Notes under the pieces: model-generated
Seen by the model: only the letters and a program-made list of their open reading frames with translations
Database searches by the model: none
What the model was told of the DNA's origin: nothing
Sequence record: NC_028829.1
DNA length: 64,000 nucleotides
Direction: 5' to 3' (one strand)
Part shown: piece after piece, positions 20,157-27,180 of the stretch
How positions within the stretch are numbered: position 1 is the stretch's first letter
How the letters are laid out: the number at the start of each line of letters is the position of its first letter
Program-made: the position numbers and the translations under genes

Positions 20157-20669
20157 ATGATTAAAGAATATCTAAAGAAACAAACCAAGCGCGTAGTTGC
20201 AGAATTTGCAAAAGAGTACTACGACATCGAACTTGATAAATCGCTGACTAAAAGCAAGATGATCGACGAGTTATTCACACACGAGCTACGCGAGGTTAAA
20301 GAACTACCACTAGAATGCTCTGTAATCGAGTCTGAGACGCGCTGTGAATCAGTCGATGAATCGGACGCGATTGTAGTCAAAGAGCTTTCAGACGACGTTA
20401 AGAAAGAATTAGAAGGTGTTTCTGCTAATGCCCCTTTAGGTGATGAAAACGTAACATTAGTAATCAAGGACGAATTCAAGCCTAAATGGATGCCTACTTA
20501 TCGCCGTGGGGATGAGCTATATCAGCCAGTTGCGCATGATGTGATTCATGATTGGAATATAGGTCGACGCGACTCTCACGAATTGAAGACGATTGAATAT
20601 TGGGTTAAGCGAAATGGTCATCTTTTAGTTCACGACCGTCTTTCGAACAGCTTCATTTATCTGAGGTAA
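20157..20669 (+). CDS. inh: Inh (prohead protease inhibitor)-like protein, paralogue 1
   Basis: EFAKEYY.IELD N-terminal motif; C-terminus IEYWVKRNGHLLVHDRLSNSF; divergent from uvsW as in T4. Confidence 0.7.
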   Translation: MIKEYLKKQTKRVVAEFAKEYYDIELDKSLTKSKMIDELFTHELREVKELPLECSVIESETRCESVDESDAIVVKELSDDVKKELEGVSANAPLGDENVTLVIKDEFKPKWMPTYRRGDELYQPVAHDVIHDWNIGRRDSHELKTIEYWVKRNGHLLVHDRLSNSFIYLR

Positions 20670-22136: not shown

Positions 22137-22152
22137 ATTAACCAATTTAAAA

Positions 22153-22176
22153 GGGTGACTTCGGTCGCCCTTTTTT
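22153..22176 (+). terminator. Terminator of the early two-gene cassette
   Basis: GGGTGAC-TTCG-GTCGCCC-T6. Confidence 0.92.
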
Positions 22177-22184
22177 CGTTTGCG

Positions 22185-22192
22185 TCTAAATA
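22185..22192 (+). promoter_or_regulatory. Late promoter variant TCTAAATA
   Basis: Directly after a terminator, 22 nt before an ATG. Confidence 0.65.
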
Positions 22193-22214: not shown

Positions 22215-22808
22215 ATGATAGAATTTTTAACAGAAATGGACAAAGCTAAACAAACCGGTAGATGGGCTCAATTTAAAGCAGCAACATCGGGTTCGAAAGG
22301 TGAAGTTAAAAAGCGTATGCAGCGCAAAGGTGGCTTCTGGGGTGTGTTTGCAGGTTTGATCGCGAGTGCGACAGCATCGGGTGAACTTAGAAAGCACAAT
22401 AAGTCACTAGAAGACCATAAGCTAAGAATGGAGCGTGCAGCAGTGAACACAATTCACAGTCTGAATGTTCTTAAAGACGTAATCGAGCTTGAACGTCCTC
22501 GTGACGAAGTAATGAAAGCTGCAAAGCGTTTAAAGCTTGATAACATGGAAATGAAGAAATACGCAACCGAAATGATTCGTGTCGTAGATGAATACAAGCG
22601 TGTTCATGACGAAGATAAGCAGGCAGGTGCGTTTCGTTTTAATGTGAAAGAATACGACCGTCATGATTTTCGTGAGATTTACCATCACTTGAACATGATT
22701 GAAGATAGCACATTTTACGTCGATAAAGCAGCGTCATCGGCTATGACTGGCGATACTGAATACGCAATTCGTATGATTCGCAATATTACAAACGCAGCAA
22801 CGAGGTAA
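22215..22808 (+). CDS. Helical hypothetical late protein, candidate internal head protein
   Basis: MIEFLTE|M start; Gly-rich hydrophobic segment GGFWGVFAGLIASATASG. Confidence 0.7.
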   Translation: MIEFLTEMDKAKQTGRWAQFKAATSGSKGEVKKRMQRKGGFWGVFAGLIASATASGELRKHNKSLEDHKLRMERAAVNTIHSLNVLKDVIELERPRDEVMKAAKRLKLDNMEMKKYATEMIRVVDEYKRVHDEDKQAGAFRFNVKEYDRHDFREIYHHLNMIEDSTFYVDKAASSAMTGDTEYAIRMIRNITNAATR

Positions 22809-22810
22809 TA

Positions 22811-23731
22811 ATGAGCATAATTTTTGAACGCGCTACATTGAAAACTCGAAAAGGTAGTGCAGTAAAACGCAGCAAGTGGGGCGTGGGTAAAGACATTGGC
22901 GGTTCATTATATGTTCACATTGACTATATCCCAGATGAGTTCAAGCAAATGGTTGCTGATGCTCGTACTCAAGTATCAATTGCAAACTCACAATTTACTC
23001 CGAATGTAGTACGAATTGACTACAAGAAAGGTGGAGTTGCTTTCTACGATTCAGTTGAATTTGATACTGTACAAGAACCAGCCGCGGGTATGATGATTAC
23101 TTATAGAGACGGTGTTGTTTCCAAACCACGTCAAGTAAACCAAATATGGCATCACAAATGGTTGTGGGTTGGTGATGATTATAGAGGGTTTGATACTTCT
23201 CAGTCATATGACCGCTCGGCTCAGTGGCTAGATCATGACGATATCCCATTTGCCAAGATCGGTAATAAGAAGACATGGCGTGAATGGTTATCTTCAGTTA
23301 ACTTGACTGAGGCATTTGACCGACCATCTAAAATACACTGGGTTGAGAAGAGAATTCACAGTTGGGGTGGTACGTTCACGGTAAACGGGGACGAATACGC
23401 GATTGCAATACAGTATCAAGAACAAAACGATGCATGGGAACTTGTGTTCTTAGGTATGAACAGTTCGGGTGATTATACTTACAGCGCAACAGGTCGAGGC
23501 AATATGTATGGTGTGTTTGCGACAGTAATGAGCGGTATGCGTGAATTTATAGACGAGCGAGAGCCAGAAACAATTTATTTCAGTGCAGAGCGAGATATAA
23601 AAAACGACAGTGATTCGAGAATAAAACTATACAATCGTTTAGTAAAACGATATGCTGATACATTACCGAATTACACATATAAAACGGTCGAAGGGAAAGT
23701 CTCGACTAAAACATATTTCATTAGAAAATAA
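22811..23731 (+). CDS. Two-domain hypothetical late protein (306 aa) with internal NLTE|A
   Basis: ORF with GAGG RBS; N-terminal domain GVGKDIGGSLYVH...IWHHKW; C-terminal domain VFATV...FI...PETIYFSA...SRIKLYNRLV. Confidence 0.8.
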   Translation: MSIIFERATLKTRKGSAVKRSKWGVGKDIGGSLYVHIDYIPDEFKQMVADARTQVSIANSQFTPNVVRIDYKKGGVAFYDSVEFDTVQEPAAGMMITYRDGVVSKPRQVNQIWHHKWLWVGDDYRGFDTSQSYDRSAQWLDHDDIPFAKIGNKKTWREWLSSVNLTEAFDRPSKIHWVEKRIHSWGGTFTVNGDEYAIAIQYQEQNDAWELVFLGMNSSGDYTYSATGRGNMYGVFATVMSGMREFIDEREPETIYFSAERDIKNDSDSRIKLYNRLVKRYADTLPNYTYKTVEGKVSTKTYFIRK

Positions 23732-23738
23732 GAGAGCA

Positions 23739-23858
23739 ATGAAAACATTTCAAGATTTTCATGAATTCAGCAGATTTCGTCCCTGCTTGATAATTAAAAA
23801 GCGCATTTTTGCGCTTTTTTTGTATCTATTGGTTGACGACAACACCAAAAAGCCGTAA
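23739..23858 (+). pseudogene. Probable remnant of an internal-protein gene (MKTFQDFHEF...) whose frame runs through the terminator and the next promoter
   Basis: AAGAGAG RBS plus a T4 capsid-targeting-like N-terminus; codons 20-39 overlap the terminator and promoter. Confidence 0.45.
23796..23821 (+). terminator. Terminator of the late cassette
   Basis: AAAAAGCGCA-TTTT-TGCGCTTTTTT. Confidence 0.85.
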
Positions 23859-23861
23859 TAT
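23833..23861 (+). promoter_or_regulatory. Early promoter TTGACG-N17-TAATAT
   Basis: Read from sequence. Confidence 0.8.
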
Positions 23862-25489: not shown

Positions 25490-25987
25490 CTATTTAATTG
25501 TGATGAATTGACTATTGCGAGTTTCACGCACTAGCACCTTGCCGTCTTTCTCGACATAATGCAAGATTGATTTAACTACGCGAAGATCTGATGCGAGTAC
25601 ATCATCAAGCGAACCATCCCCTGCGATAATAGCTTTCGCAGATGTAACCGCGCTATCAGAAGCAGTCATGAAAAATTCACGACCACGACGGAATGGCAAT
25701 GGCATTGGTTCAAATGATTCATCGATTGGTAGTTCTACTTTATCAACGACTTCAGTTTTCACTTCGGAAATTTCTTTAATTTCTTTGGTTTCATCTTTCG
25801 TCTCTACAAGAAGTTCTTCCCATGGTAGTTGTTTCAATGGCGTTTTACCTTCAGCTTCTTCTACAAGCTTCTTAGCCATTGCGCCTTTTGATTTACGACG
25901 GTCAAGTTCGATGCCGTAATATTCTTTTGCAAACTCGTCTAGTTTTTCTTTAGTTAACGACTCTGCGTGTTTTTTCAATTGACTCAT
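25490..25987 (-). CDS. inh: Inh-like protein, paralogue 2
   Basis: C-terminus SILHYVEKDGKVLVRETRNSQFITIK closely matches T4 Inh as I recall it. Confidence 0.82.
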   Translation of the reverse strand: MSQLKKHAESLTKEKLDEFAKEYYGIELDRRKSKGAMAKKLVEEAEGKTPLKQLPWEELLVETKDETKEIKEISEVKTEVVDKVELPIDESFEPMPLPFRRGREFFMTASDSAVTSAKAIIAGDGSLDDVLASDLRVVKSILHYVEKDGKVLVRETRNSQFITIK

Positions 25988-26017: not shown

Positions 26018-26058
26018 TATTTAGACAGGTTGACTTATATTATTTAGTCTTGTACAGT
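26018..26058. promoter_or_regulatory. Divergent promoters: late TCTAAATA (-, 26018-26025) and sigma70-like TTGACT-N17-TACAGT (+, 26030-26058)
   Basis: Read from the intergenic sequence. Confidence 0.6.
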
Positions 26059-26082
26059 ATAGGTTCACATTGGAGAATAAAA

Positions 26083-27180
26083 ATGAAAGCGAAAATGAAC
26101 TTGATGCAAAAATACATTGTCGGGGGTGCAGTACGCGACTCCATACTGAAGCACGTAGATGGTTGGTCTAGCTTCCCGAAAGATATTGATTACGTCGTCA
26201 CTGGTTGTACACACGAACAAATGATGTCTATGTACGGTGAACCAATCGGCGTTGATTTCCCTGTTTGGCTCGATAAAGACAACAATGAAGTCGCGCTTGC
26301 TCGTGTAGAGCGTAGCACTGGCGGTAAAACCACTGACTTCACTTTCACAACTGAAGGTGTCACGTTAGAAGATGACTTATCACGACGAGATCTGACTATC
26401 AACTCGATGGCTATTCCTGACATGACGCCAAATAGTCTGTTTATGTTTGGGTCTACTGATGATGTAATCGACCCGTACGGCGGTCTAGATGACTTGAAGA
26501 ACAAGATTCTCCGTCATACAACTGAAGCGTTTGCCGAAGACCCGTTGCGTGTTCTGCGCGTCGCTCGTTTCTATGCTCGATACTACAGCATGGGATTCAC
26601 AGTCGCAGAAGAGACAGTTGATCTATGCAAGAAAATGATCAACGACGGTATGCTTGAGAATCTACCGAAAGAACGTGTTTGGCTTGAAACACAAAAAGCA
26701 CTGTCAGAGAAAGACGCGCACATGTACTTTGTGTTTCTAAGTCAGATTGGGTTCTCACCGAGACCATATGCACATGAGATTCATTCTCTCCGACACTTCA
26801 GACGAATGCCGTTTCACTGTGAAGATGATCAGTTGATGGCAAAATGGGCTGCGTTAAACCGTCGCCGACGTTTCGGGTCATACTTCGGTGAAACTAAGAA
26901 ATTCAGAAAGGCATCTGAGATTCTAATGAAGTTGGAATATGCAAGTGTTTTTGATGAAACAATCATTTTAATTCTCGAAACAATAGGCGCATACAAAGGG
27001 CATCTACCATTTCAAGTTGCACTTTCTCAGATCACAGATGAAGTTAAACGAAATGTAATCACTGAAATAATCGACTTAACTCGAAATGTCAAAGTTGACG
27101 TTGAACCGGGACCTGCATACGGCGAAGCTCTAACAGATGAACGTGTTAATATAGCCTACAAATATTTGCATAGTCTATAA
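26083..27180 (+). CDS. cca: tRNA nucleotidyltransferase (class II CCA-adding enzyme)
   Basis: VGGAVRD, DIDYVV, DLSRRDLTINSMA, DPYGG..DL, EDPLRVLRVARF; GGAG RBS before 26083. Confidence 0.95.
   Translation: MKAKMNLMQKYIVGGAVRDSILKHVDGWSSFPKDIDYVVTGCTHEQMMSMYGEPIGVDFPVWLDKDNNEVALARVERSTGGKTTDFTFTTEGVTLEDDLSRRDLTINSMAIPDMTPNSLFMFGSTDDVIDPYGGLDDLKNKILRHTTEAFAEDPLRVLRVARFYARYYSMGFTVAEETVDLCKKMINDGMLENLPKERVWLETQKALSEKDAHMYFVFLSQIGFSPRPYAHEIHSLRHFRRMPFHCEDDQLMAKWAALNRRRRFGSYFGETKKFRKASEILMKLEYASVFDETIILILETIGAYKGHLPFQVALSQITDEVKRNVITEIIDLTRNVKVDVEPGPAYGEALTDERVNIAYKYLHSL

Follow-up and report, generated by a model that had tools for sequence, protein, structure and literature searches.

Why does a vibriophage carry, near its head genes, a protein whose N-terminal domain recalls a bacterial enzyme associated with DNA phosphorothioation (PT)? 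The protein is the product of open reading frame (ORF) 276, which lies in a 64,000-nucleotide stretch of sequence record NC_028829.1 (the window). The window comes from Vibrio phage ValKK3, a Schizotequatrovirus of KVP40 type, and is 100% identical to KP671755; window coordinates are the coordinates of that record minus 124000. A preliminary description of ORF276 had likened, by eye, its N-terminal domain to the C-terminal domain of the DNA phosphorothioation-associated putative methyltransferase, TIGR04096 (dnd_rel_methyl). We use D as the label for this N-terminal domain and its homologues. As judged from sequence, D is almost certainly homologous to the accessory domain of TIGR04096 proteins.

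22811..23731, + strand: ORF276, 306 aa, AJT61117.1 in KP671755, PHROG 16075, annotated as hypothetical, a two-domain protein
22829..23305, + strand: domain D, aa 7-165 of ORF276, homologue of the repeated TIGR04096 accessory domain and of a polyvalent-protein domain

Homology of domain D to TIGR04096 proteins

A direct hmmscan of ORF276 aa 1-165 against TIGR04096 gave E 0.085 (11.6 bits), insignificant by itself but with aa 20-161 in register with positions 320-464 of the 478-position model, and full-length ORF276 gave no match to that model. The curated cut-off of TIGR04096 is 150 bits for the whole protein, so that ORF276, at 11.6 bits, is not a member of the family. The class-I S-adenosylmethionine (SAM) methyltransferase domain of the model (about positions 1-300) was not found in ORF276; the C-terminal accessory domain (about positions 301-464) is present in it.

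Several mid-size sequences bridge the two families. Residues 245-399 of the protein P0139 match model positions 301-462 (E 1.3e-5), and tblastn of P0139 against plasmids led to genes named by PGAP as 'DNA phosphorothioation-associated putative methyltransferase'. The profile of alignment A1, which holds 15 stand-alone homologues of D at 39-72% identity, matches all eight PGAP-annotated TIGR04096 proteins examined; membership was checked for four of the eight, at 478-873 bits. All eight carry D twice, in the architecture D-methyltransferase-D, within chains of 666-918 aa. The N-terminal copy is well conserved (27-43 bits with the A1 profile) and lies outside the 478-position model, and the C-terminal copy, which is degenerate, is the one within it. 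Because of this extra N-terminal copy, the curated model describes only part of the protein. Profile comparison of aa 1-165 with the N-terminal copies by hhalign gave 98.6% over 140 columns (E 8.8e-16), and that of phage D with the C-terminal copies gave 93% (E 3.6e-7). The motifs given for TIGR04096 in the preliminary description (GK..ALYVH, FD..PHP, ILHRKE.FV..DYP and IG...W) are visible in the alignments of D with TIGR04096 proteins. Thus the resemblance proposed in the preliminary description was borne out by hmmscan, by bridging sequences and by hhalign. What that description overlooked is that the methyltransferase half is encoded by the same phage, as ORF195 (see below).

Motifs, conservation and predicted fold of domain D

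Four motifs had been picked out in ORF276, and all four are present in their places:

22880-22918, + strand: D motif GVGKDIGGSLYVH, aa 24-36
23057-23080, + strand: D motif EFDTVQEP, aa 83-90
23141-23182, + strand: D motif QIWHHKWLWVGDDY, aa 111-124
23255-23290, + strand: D motif KIGNKKTWREWL, aa 149-160

They are the best-conserved columns of the D family, which has 25 invariant columns in A1. A word search returned 23 relatives of ORF276, 13 of which are stand-alone proteins of 168-192 aa. Because over half of the relatives stand alone, aa 1-165 can be regarded as an autonomous domain. The invariant polar residues of A1 are K27, Y34, H36, D85, E89, H114, H115, K116 and Y124, and the polar core common to phage D and the N-terminal TIGR04096 copy consists of K27, Y34, H36, D85, P90, H114, K116 and Y124. 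In the C-terminal TIGR04096 copy, several members have another residue in place of the conserved Lys, and one member has lost the His. This pattern, with the core residues kept in the N-terminal copy and eroded in the C-terminal one, is more in keeping with a functional pocket than with a role in structure alone.

Phage copies of D are Trp-rich (6-8 Trp per 170 residues). The pI of D in ORF276 is 9.05, and it exceeds 8.5 in 13 of the 15 family members. Mimicry of DNA, one way to read the mimicry entertained in the preliminary description, is unlikely because D is basic; the strongly acidic surface of Ocr or ArdA was not found.

The AlphaFold2 model of D is confident, with a predicted local distance difference test score (pLDDT) of 88, and combines a beta-hairpin and a long helix with a sheet of four strands and a tail of helices. 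Foldseek of this model against PDB gave no match. The best score in a VIA-wide fold search was only Z 3.9, to cystatin/BLIP/PepSY-like alpha+beta folds, and a BFVD fold search returned nothing but a homologue. This absence of a fold match for the predicted structure is no proof of a new fold. No Pfam model matched D, even at E 5 across the 15 members, a PDB sequence search with the D profile gave a chance match only (E 0.57), a search of the ESM Atlas with D gave no usable match, and PADLOC had no match for the whole of ORF276 or for either half. Three candidate motifs in D were considered and dropped: an HKD nuclease motif, of which the spacing from H-x-K to D is wrong and variable; a Walker-A loop, since GVGKD lies in a beta-hairpin and is not followed by S/T; and a KxDG ligase motif, which is not conserved in TIGR04096.

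Distribution and partners of domain D

HMMER with A1 over 1.84 billion cluster representatives (50% identity) returned 1127 proteins at E <= 1e-3 and 805 at E <= 1e-10. Architectures were read from a sample of 176 D proteins outside TIGR04096 that were returned by the searches, mostly by the HMMER search with A1. By size, 67 of them are solo (<= 220 aa), 79 have 221-1000 aa and 30 are giants of >2500 aa. In 54 of the 176 proteins, 22 of the 30 giants among them, D has a TIGR04096-type class-I methyltransferase as its immediate neighbour, and this is its dominant partner. In our reading of the architecture list, D comes first in about 28 pairs and the methyltransferase in about 25. Since the two are adjacent in either order in many proteins, they form a conserved pair. 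The methyltransferase of the pair has the SAM loop DYGCG.G.D and the motif VLNVIE; the DPPY/NPPY and PC/ENV signatures of DNA base methyltransferases were not found in it.

Four D-bearing giants were scanned. Three of them (P0040, P0043 and P0046) are DarB-like polyvalent proteins, each with LPD38 and a SNF2 helicase; P0046 additionally has LPD3 and DarA_C, and P0040 an Eco57I-type methylase. The fourth, P0037, had no Pfam match. D was thus found to recur inside giant multi-effector proteins with LPD, DarA or SNF2-methylase hallmarks, and one D-bearing giant gene lies on a phage-like 55-kb contig. Rarer partners of D are a CCA-adding enzyme with HD, NFACT-R, Tpt1, YafQ, ART-PolyVal, GNAT, ParB and NlpC/P60. 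In the metagenomic proteins P0069 and P0108, D is fused to a CCA-adding enzyme with HD that is homologous to the tRNA nucleotidyltransferase of ValKK3.

An 882-kb V. parahaemolyticus replicon (L017 5956-6981) encodes a D-methyltransferase fusion and a 96-kb Vibrio plasmid (L018 5986-6438) encodes a solo D, which shows that the module also circulates on replicons of the phage's host genus. P0139 (L020 5083-9218, on a contig of a metagenome-assembled genome, MAG) has the order methyltransferase-D and a signal-peptide-like start; its gene is divergent from a radical-SAM gene and from a class-V aminotransferase/cysteine-desulfurase-like gene. A D-motif scan of genome contigs found one locus only, on a 3-kb MAG contig, and TIGR04096 was found neither in the genome of that contig nor in 14 control genomes. 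A word search with P0088 gave no named relatives. In the literature we found no paper that names TIGR04096, gives its function or describes D. The passages searched in the paper on polyvalent proteins (PMC5512222) do not contain the D-methyltransferase pair, and a search by methyltransferase terms retrieved no passage on a TIGR04096-type methyltransferase from the Dnd reappraisal and BREX type 4 PT papers.

ORF195, a separate methyltransferase gene

If D is often paired with a methyltransferase, where is the partner of ORF276? The profile of the pair methyltransferase led to a 215-aa ORF in the nearest genome, and from there to the ValKK3 copy:

KP671755 94262-94909 (L021 5001-5648), outside the window and 52 kb from ORF276: ORF195, the putative methyltransferase half of the pair

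ORF195 is closely preceded by gp24, the late sigma factor and a gene for 481 aa (ORF196). It matches at E 6e-45 the methyltransferase half of P0036, a metagenomic protein in which D (residues 1-170) is fused to a methyltransferase (199-374), and in about 25 other D proteins it likewise matches the methyltransferase next to D. As P0036 fuses D with an ORF195-type methyltransferase, it provides a gene-fusion (Rosetta-stone) link between ORF276 and ORF195. The best NCBIfam match of ORF195 is TIGR04096, at only E 0.12, so that its placement in the family rests on the fusion proteins and not on the curated model. In a tblastn search over 50,697 phage records, 51 contained D and 49 contained ORF195, and every one of these was a Vibrio phage. 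The matches listed are KVP40-like phages (those of D were listed in full), and the two D-only records identifiable among the matches listed are partial genomes. From these sequences, D and the methyltransferase are probably functional partners.

The gene just upstream of ORF195, ORF196 (481 aa, KP671755 94917-96362), has the leader-like start MLGNFDSFLSE. Its orthologue in phage 6E35.1a was labelled 'Defense?' by the authors and was not detected in particles (PMC12028318).

The C-terminal half of ORF276

The second half of ORF276 is of a different kind.

23318..23728, + strand: GNAT-like domain of DUF6934 type, aa 170-306, mosaic between close phages

The Pfam model DUF6934 matches aa 170-306 at E 5.7e-6 with 26.9 bits, just under its cut-off of 27 bits, and Pfam GNAT had no match on this domain. 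The predicted structure (pLDDT about 75-89) appears to have the GNAT fold: nearly all of the top 50 hits in the VIA fold search were GNAT acetyltransferases, at Z 8.6-7.4, a range the tool calls 'middling', and Foldseek returned GNAT chains with probabilities of 0.95-1.0 (E 1e-3 to 1e-2). The acetyl-CoA pyrophosphate-binding loop [QR]xxGx[GA] was not found in ORF276, which has the partial form SATGRG at the expected place. The motif is matched only in nt-1 (RATGAG) and was not found in C-terminal domains of KVP40 type.

Between ValKK3 and KVP40 (L002 4714-5676) the identity is 96% in the D half and 34% in the C-terminal half, and phage 1.081.O has D alone at the syntenic place, without the GNAT-like domain. 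As the C-terminal half is swapped or missing among close phages, D is the constant part. The junction of the swap is the conserved L-[TS]-E linker.

The C-terminal domain of ORF276 also matches PHROG 6387 (E 2e-20). A 288-aa protein of PHROG 6387, VP6E351A_0154, has 37/51 spectral counts in particles of phage 6E35.1a (PMC12028318, Tables S4 and S8). There thus seems to be another virion-associated protein of DUF6934 type in KVP40-like phages.

Leaders, cleavage sites and particle proteomics

Does ORF276 travel in the virion? Two sites in it and one neighbouring gene bear on this question.

22811..22828, + strand: leader MSIIFE, aa 1-6 of ORF276, ends in an I-x-E site of prohead-protease type (MSIIFE|R)
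23303..23311, + strand: L-T-E in the inter-domain linker, aa 165-167, kept as L-[TS]-E with E167 invariant, candidate second protease site
22215..22808, + strand: ORF275, 197 aa, conserved partner gene upstream of ORF276, with the leader MIEFLTE and a hydrophobic segment

The leaders MSIIFE|R (ORF276), MIEFLTE|M (ORF275) and MKQFGEFLTE|V (ORF195) resemble the starts of gp23, gp22, gp21 and the core protein of the same phage. Of the 94 family members that have D at the N-terminus, 51 carry, ahead of the first conserved strand, a leader of 6-18 aa with [LIM]xE at its end, and the other 43 begin with the domain itself, which marks the leader as an add-on to D. Stand-alone homologues of D end just after L-[TS]-E.

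Spectral counts for particle proteins of the related phage 6E35.1a are given for two replicates (PMC12028318, Tables S4 and S8). The orthologue of ORF276 (VP6E351A_0018) has 9/14, that of ORF275 (VP6E351A_0019) 21/34 and that of ORF195 (VP6E351A_0103) 31/79, beside 122/233 for an Alt-like ADP-ribosyltransferase, 17/28 for the prohead protease and 47/58 for the tail tube. The particles were precipitated with polyethylene glycol only and the preparation also held soluble enzymes; dUTPase has 7/10 counts, DNA helicase 7/19 and single-stranded DNA-binding protein 4/2 (PMC12028318). By these counts the ORF195-type methyltransferase is convincingly particle-associated and the ORF276 orthologue marginally so.

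We consider packaging of ORF276 and ORF195 in the virion somewhat likely, and packaging followed by injection plausible but unproven. The preliminary description had ORF276 packaged, trimmed by gp21 and injected. The support for this is circumstantial: the MSIIFE|R site, the domain boundary at L-[TS]-E, the orthologue in particles and the presence of D in DarB-like proteins argue for it, and the commonness of [LI]xE leaders argues against it.

The ORF275-ORF276 cassette

ORF276 starts 2 nt after the stop of ORF275, for which no family match was found. ORF275 has a pI of 9.5, and its hydrophobic segment is near aa 40-58. Across KVP40-like phages it always precedes the D gene, and the ORF275-ORF276 pair is syntenic in phage 1.081.O. 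The limits and signals of the cassette are as follows:

22149..22174, + strand: intrinsic-terminator-like hairpin, an 11-bp stem followed by a T run, which ends the upstream early genes and is the 5' limit of the cassette
22185..22192, + strand: candidate late promoter TCTAAATA, 23 nt before ORF275
23796..23819, + strand: terminator-like hairpin, the 3' limit of the cassette
23833-23861, + strand: sigma-70-like promoter for ORF277, 3' of the hairpin at 23796..23819

The consensus of the T4-type late promoter is TATAAATA, from which TCTAAATA differs by one mismatch, and no good sigma-70 site was found between the upstream terminator and ORF275. By its sequence, TCTAAATA is a candidate only for the late promoter of the cassette.

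The cassette is located between uvsW and the inh / gp23-22-21 head genes. ORF271 (20157-20669, + strand) is paralogous over its full length to the prohead-protease inhibitor Inh (ORF279, 25490-25987, - strand), with 28% identity (E 1e-13). The ORF272-278 block is therefore bracketed by two Inh-like genes in opposite orientation, both annotated as inhibitors in KVP40. A tRNA nucleotidyltransferase gene (26050-27180, + strand) lies 2.3 kb downstream of ORF276. In the 18.5 kb flanking ORF276 no phosphorothioation genes were found; only T4-type phage genes are there.

What ORF276 may do

We propose that ORF276 is one half of a split two-part D-methyltransferase module that is carried in the virion and acts at entry, and we hold this reading as a whole to be evenly balanced between right and wrong. 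D would be a recognition or docking subunit. It would bring a partner transferase to its substrate, ORF195 in trans and the GNAT-like domain in cis, and the substrate would most likely be nucleic acid. ORF276 and ORF195 would enter the prohead by means of their short T4-type leaders and be trimmed there by the prohead protease. They would then be injected with the DNA and go to work as soon as infection begins, a mode of action presumed for DarB-type polyvalent proteins. An early counter-defence role for the two proteins is a tentative proposal, to which we give slightly less than an even chance. Homology, pairing, gene fusion and co-occurrence come from computation and the detection in particles from published data; binding, processing, injection and counter-defence are inferred.

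Several points weigh against this proposal. The motif [LI]xE occurs within the first 12 residues of 13 of the 61 long ORFs of the window, and still in 7 of 55 when the known head proteins and the ORF275-ORF276 cassette are left aside; within ORF276 three such sites were observed against 1.6 expected. Being so common in window ORFs, the motif alone is weak evidence. The 9/14 counts of the ORF276 orthologue are within the range of obvious contaminants (dUTPase and helicase). The co-occurrence of D and ORF195 is limited to one phage group and is not phylogenetically independent. The solved relatives of the pair methyltransferase match it in the SAM loop only (TehB-like, E 0.013), and since the DPPY/NPPY and PC/ENV signatures are absent as well, a DNA target is not indicated. 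D has no solved fold match to guide its function, and its invariant polar residues (K27, H36, D85, H114, K116 and Y124) could equally mark an enzyme.

A serious rival, if an unlikely one, is an RNA- or tRNA-directed role, in which D binds RNA (the end or the body of tRNA) and recruits RNA-modifying or repair enzymes, so that the module protects or repairs the translation apparatus and is not anti-restriction. D is fused to the CCA-adding enzyme and HD in P0069 and P0108, to NFACT-R in two proteins, to the Tpt1/KptA RNA 2'-phosphotransferase and to the YafQ RNase toxin. The P0036 gene (L022 217-5395, on a metagenomic phage contig) lies among RNA-ligase, SpoU 2'-O-methylase and AAA_18 kinase-like genes, ValKK3 has its tRNA nucleotidyltransferase gene close downstream of ORF276, and the methyltransferase lacks DNA-methylase motifs. 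However, such fusions are few, about 7 of 61 mid-size proteins, and as polyvalent proteins string together unrelated effectors, adjacency to domains other than methyltransferases may mean little. The pair moreover adjoins DarB-like DNA methylase-helicase modules in the three annotated giants, and its cellular context is DNA phosphorothioation.

It is improbable, in our view, that D is itself an enzyme, for example a hydrolase or a transferase whose substrate is a nucleotide or a small signal molecule, with the neighbouring methyltransferase or GNAT-like domain performing a second step on the same substrate. Nine polar residues of D, listed above, are invariant across 39-72% identity. The core GK, Y.H, FD, H.K and Y is kept in the N-terminal copies of TIGR04096 and eroded in the C-terminal ones, as is typical of an active and a degenerate pair, and the 67 solo proteins among the 176 indicate that D works without a fused partner. 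Against this, D matched no known catalytic fold or motif, HKD and Walker-A misfitting in spacing or secondary structure, and its best structural neighbours are the cystatin/BLIP/PepSY-like folds, which are binding folds, at a Z of only 3-4.

The preliminary description had suggested that a stand-alone phage copy might bind or mimic a component of PT-based restriction. In such a PT-specific reading D, alone or with ORF195, would recognise PT DNA or a Dnd/Ssp component and mask, mimic or alter the mark, so that restriction by SspE or DndFGH fails; this too is improbable, to much the same degree as an enzymatic D. TIGR04096 is the only cellular family that carries D, and its genes were confirmed to adjoin Ssp/Dnd-type phosphorothioation genes in four to five of the eight bacterial loci inspected. 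In four loci (L004, L005, L007 and L008) they are next to DUF4007/SspB-like, 3'-phosphoadenosine 5'-phosphosulfate (PAPS)-reductase, cysteine-desulfurase or DndB genes, and in L006 a cysteine desulfurase gene is near. The partner methyltransferase is not of DNA-base type, so that its acceptor could be an unusual one. Ssp and Dnd systems are present in vibrios, according to the part of PMC12839542 that cites Xiong et al. 2020. However, the link of D to phosphorothioate defence is by association only, and three of the eight TIGR04096 loci have no PT genes nearby. Most D proteins come from phages and polyvalent proteins without PT context, ORF276 has no PADLOC match, D is basic and not an acidic DNA mimic, and the literature that we searched held no paper on D or on the function of TIGR04096. 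That D and ORF195 are a virion-delivered enzyme pair which recognises PT marks, or the Ssp/Dnd machinery, and masks or chemically changes what it recognises is, if anything, the more doubtful form of this reading.

Finally, it is very improbable that ORF276 is no more than a minor head protein, structural or for assembly, whose similarity to TIGR04096 has no functional meaning for infection: its gene does lie in a head-gene neighbourhood, between two prohead-protease-inhibitor paralogues and near gp23/22/21, and its orthologue was detected in particles, but most occurrences of D are non-structural, in polyvalent effectors, in fusions to methyltransferases and on bacterial plasmids, and a C-terminal half that is swapped or missing in close relatives is ill-suited to a fixed structural part.

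Comparison with known systems

How does the proposed split D-methyltransferase module compare with known systems? Like phage D, TIGR04096 proteins such as WP_011153563.1 (Synechocystis pSYSM) and WP_011316602.1 (Trichormus variabilis) have the motif order GK / Y.H / FD..P / H.K / Y / G...W, and their methyltransferase is resembled by phage ORF195, also in the stretch ahead of motif I and in the VLNV(I/V) motif. TIGR04096 proteins have D, methyltransferase and D in one chain; in the phage these parts are divided between two genes, and a GNAT-like domain is joined to D. At the place of PILHRKETFV in TIGR04096, the phage subfamily shows the Trp-rich motif QIWHHKWLWV, and TIGR04096 loci often contain PT genes while the ORF276 locus does not.

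In DarB-type polyvalent proteins, D and its methyltransferase are embedded in chains of 3000-6400 aa. ORF276, by comparison, is small and has two domains, its D has no Pfam LPD model and its delivery is only proposed. Domains of polyvalent type also occur solo near phage structural genes and are presumed there to be early-invasion factors, according to the passages seen of Iyer, Burroughs, Anand, de Souza and Aravind 2017 (PMC5512222).

ORF276, ORF275 and ORF195 share with the internal proteins and Alt of phage T4 their short [LI]xE leaders, the presence of their orthologues in particles alongside an Alt-like protein, and the location of their genes near head genes. The T4 internal head proteins and Alt enter the prohead by a short N-terminal leader, are cut by gp21 at [LI]xE and are injected; IPI* of T4 blocks GmrSD. 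The phage proteins described here have no sequence similarity to T4 IPI-III or Alt, the leader of ORF276 has only 6 residues, the [LI]xE motif is common in this genome, and for these proteins cleavage and injection are only proposed.

For the C-terminal domain only, the predicted fold is like that of GNATs, among them Sulfolobus PAT (Z 8.6) and the anti-CRISPR AcrVA5 (Z 8.1, with 93 of 95 AcrVA5 residues aligned). Unlike GNATs, this domain has no Pfam GNAT match, and of the acetyl-CoA loop only a partial form is present in ValKK3 and nt-1 and none in phages of KVP40 type.

Significance

D has no Pfam model, and we found no solved structure of it and no paper on it, yet it is present in more than 1000 clusters at 50% identity. 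It joins three fields: methyltransferases encoded next to PT genes, injected polyvalent proteins like DarB, and a pair of core genes of the KVP40-like vibriophages, which figure in aquaculture phage work. Split as they are, ORF276 and ORF195 are two small deletable genes with orthologues in particles of a related, cultivable phage, and they could reveal the function of the D-methyltransferase pair. If the module does act on nucleic acid at entry, it would represent a new anti-restriction chemistry. If its target were PT, it would be the first phage counter-defence aimed at a DNA backbone modification and the first anti-PT factor, and a function would thereby be assigned to the bacterial TIGR04096 proteins.

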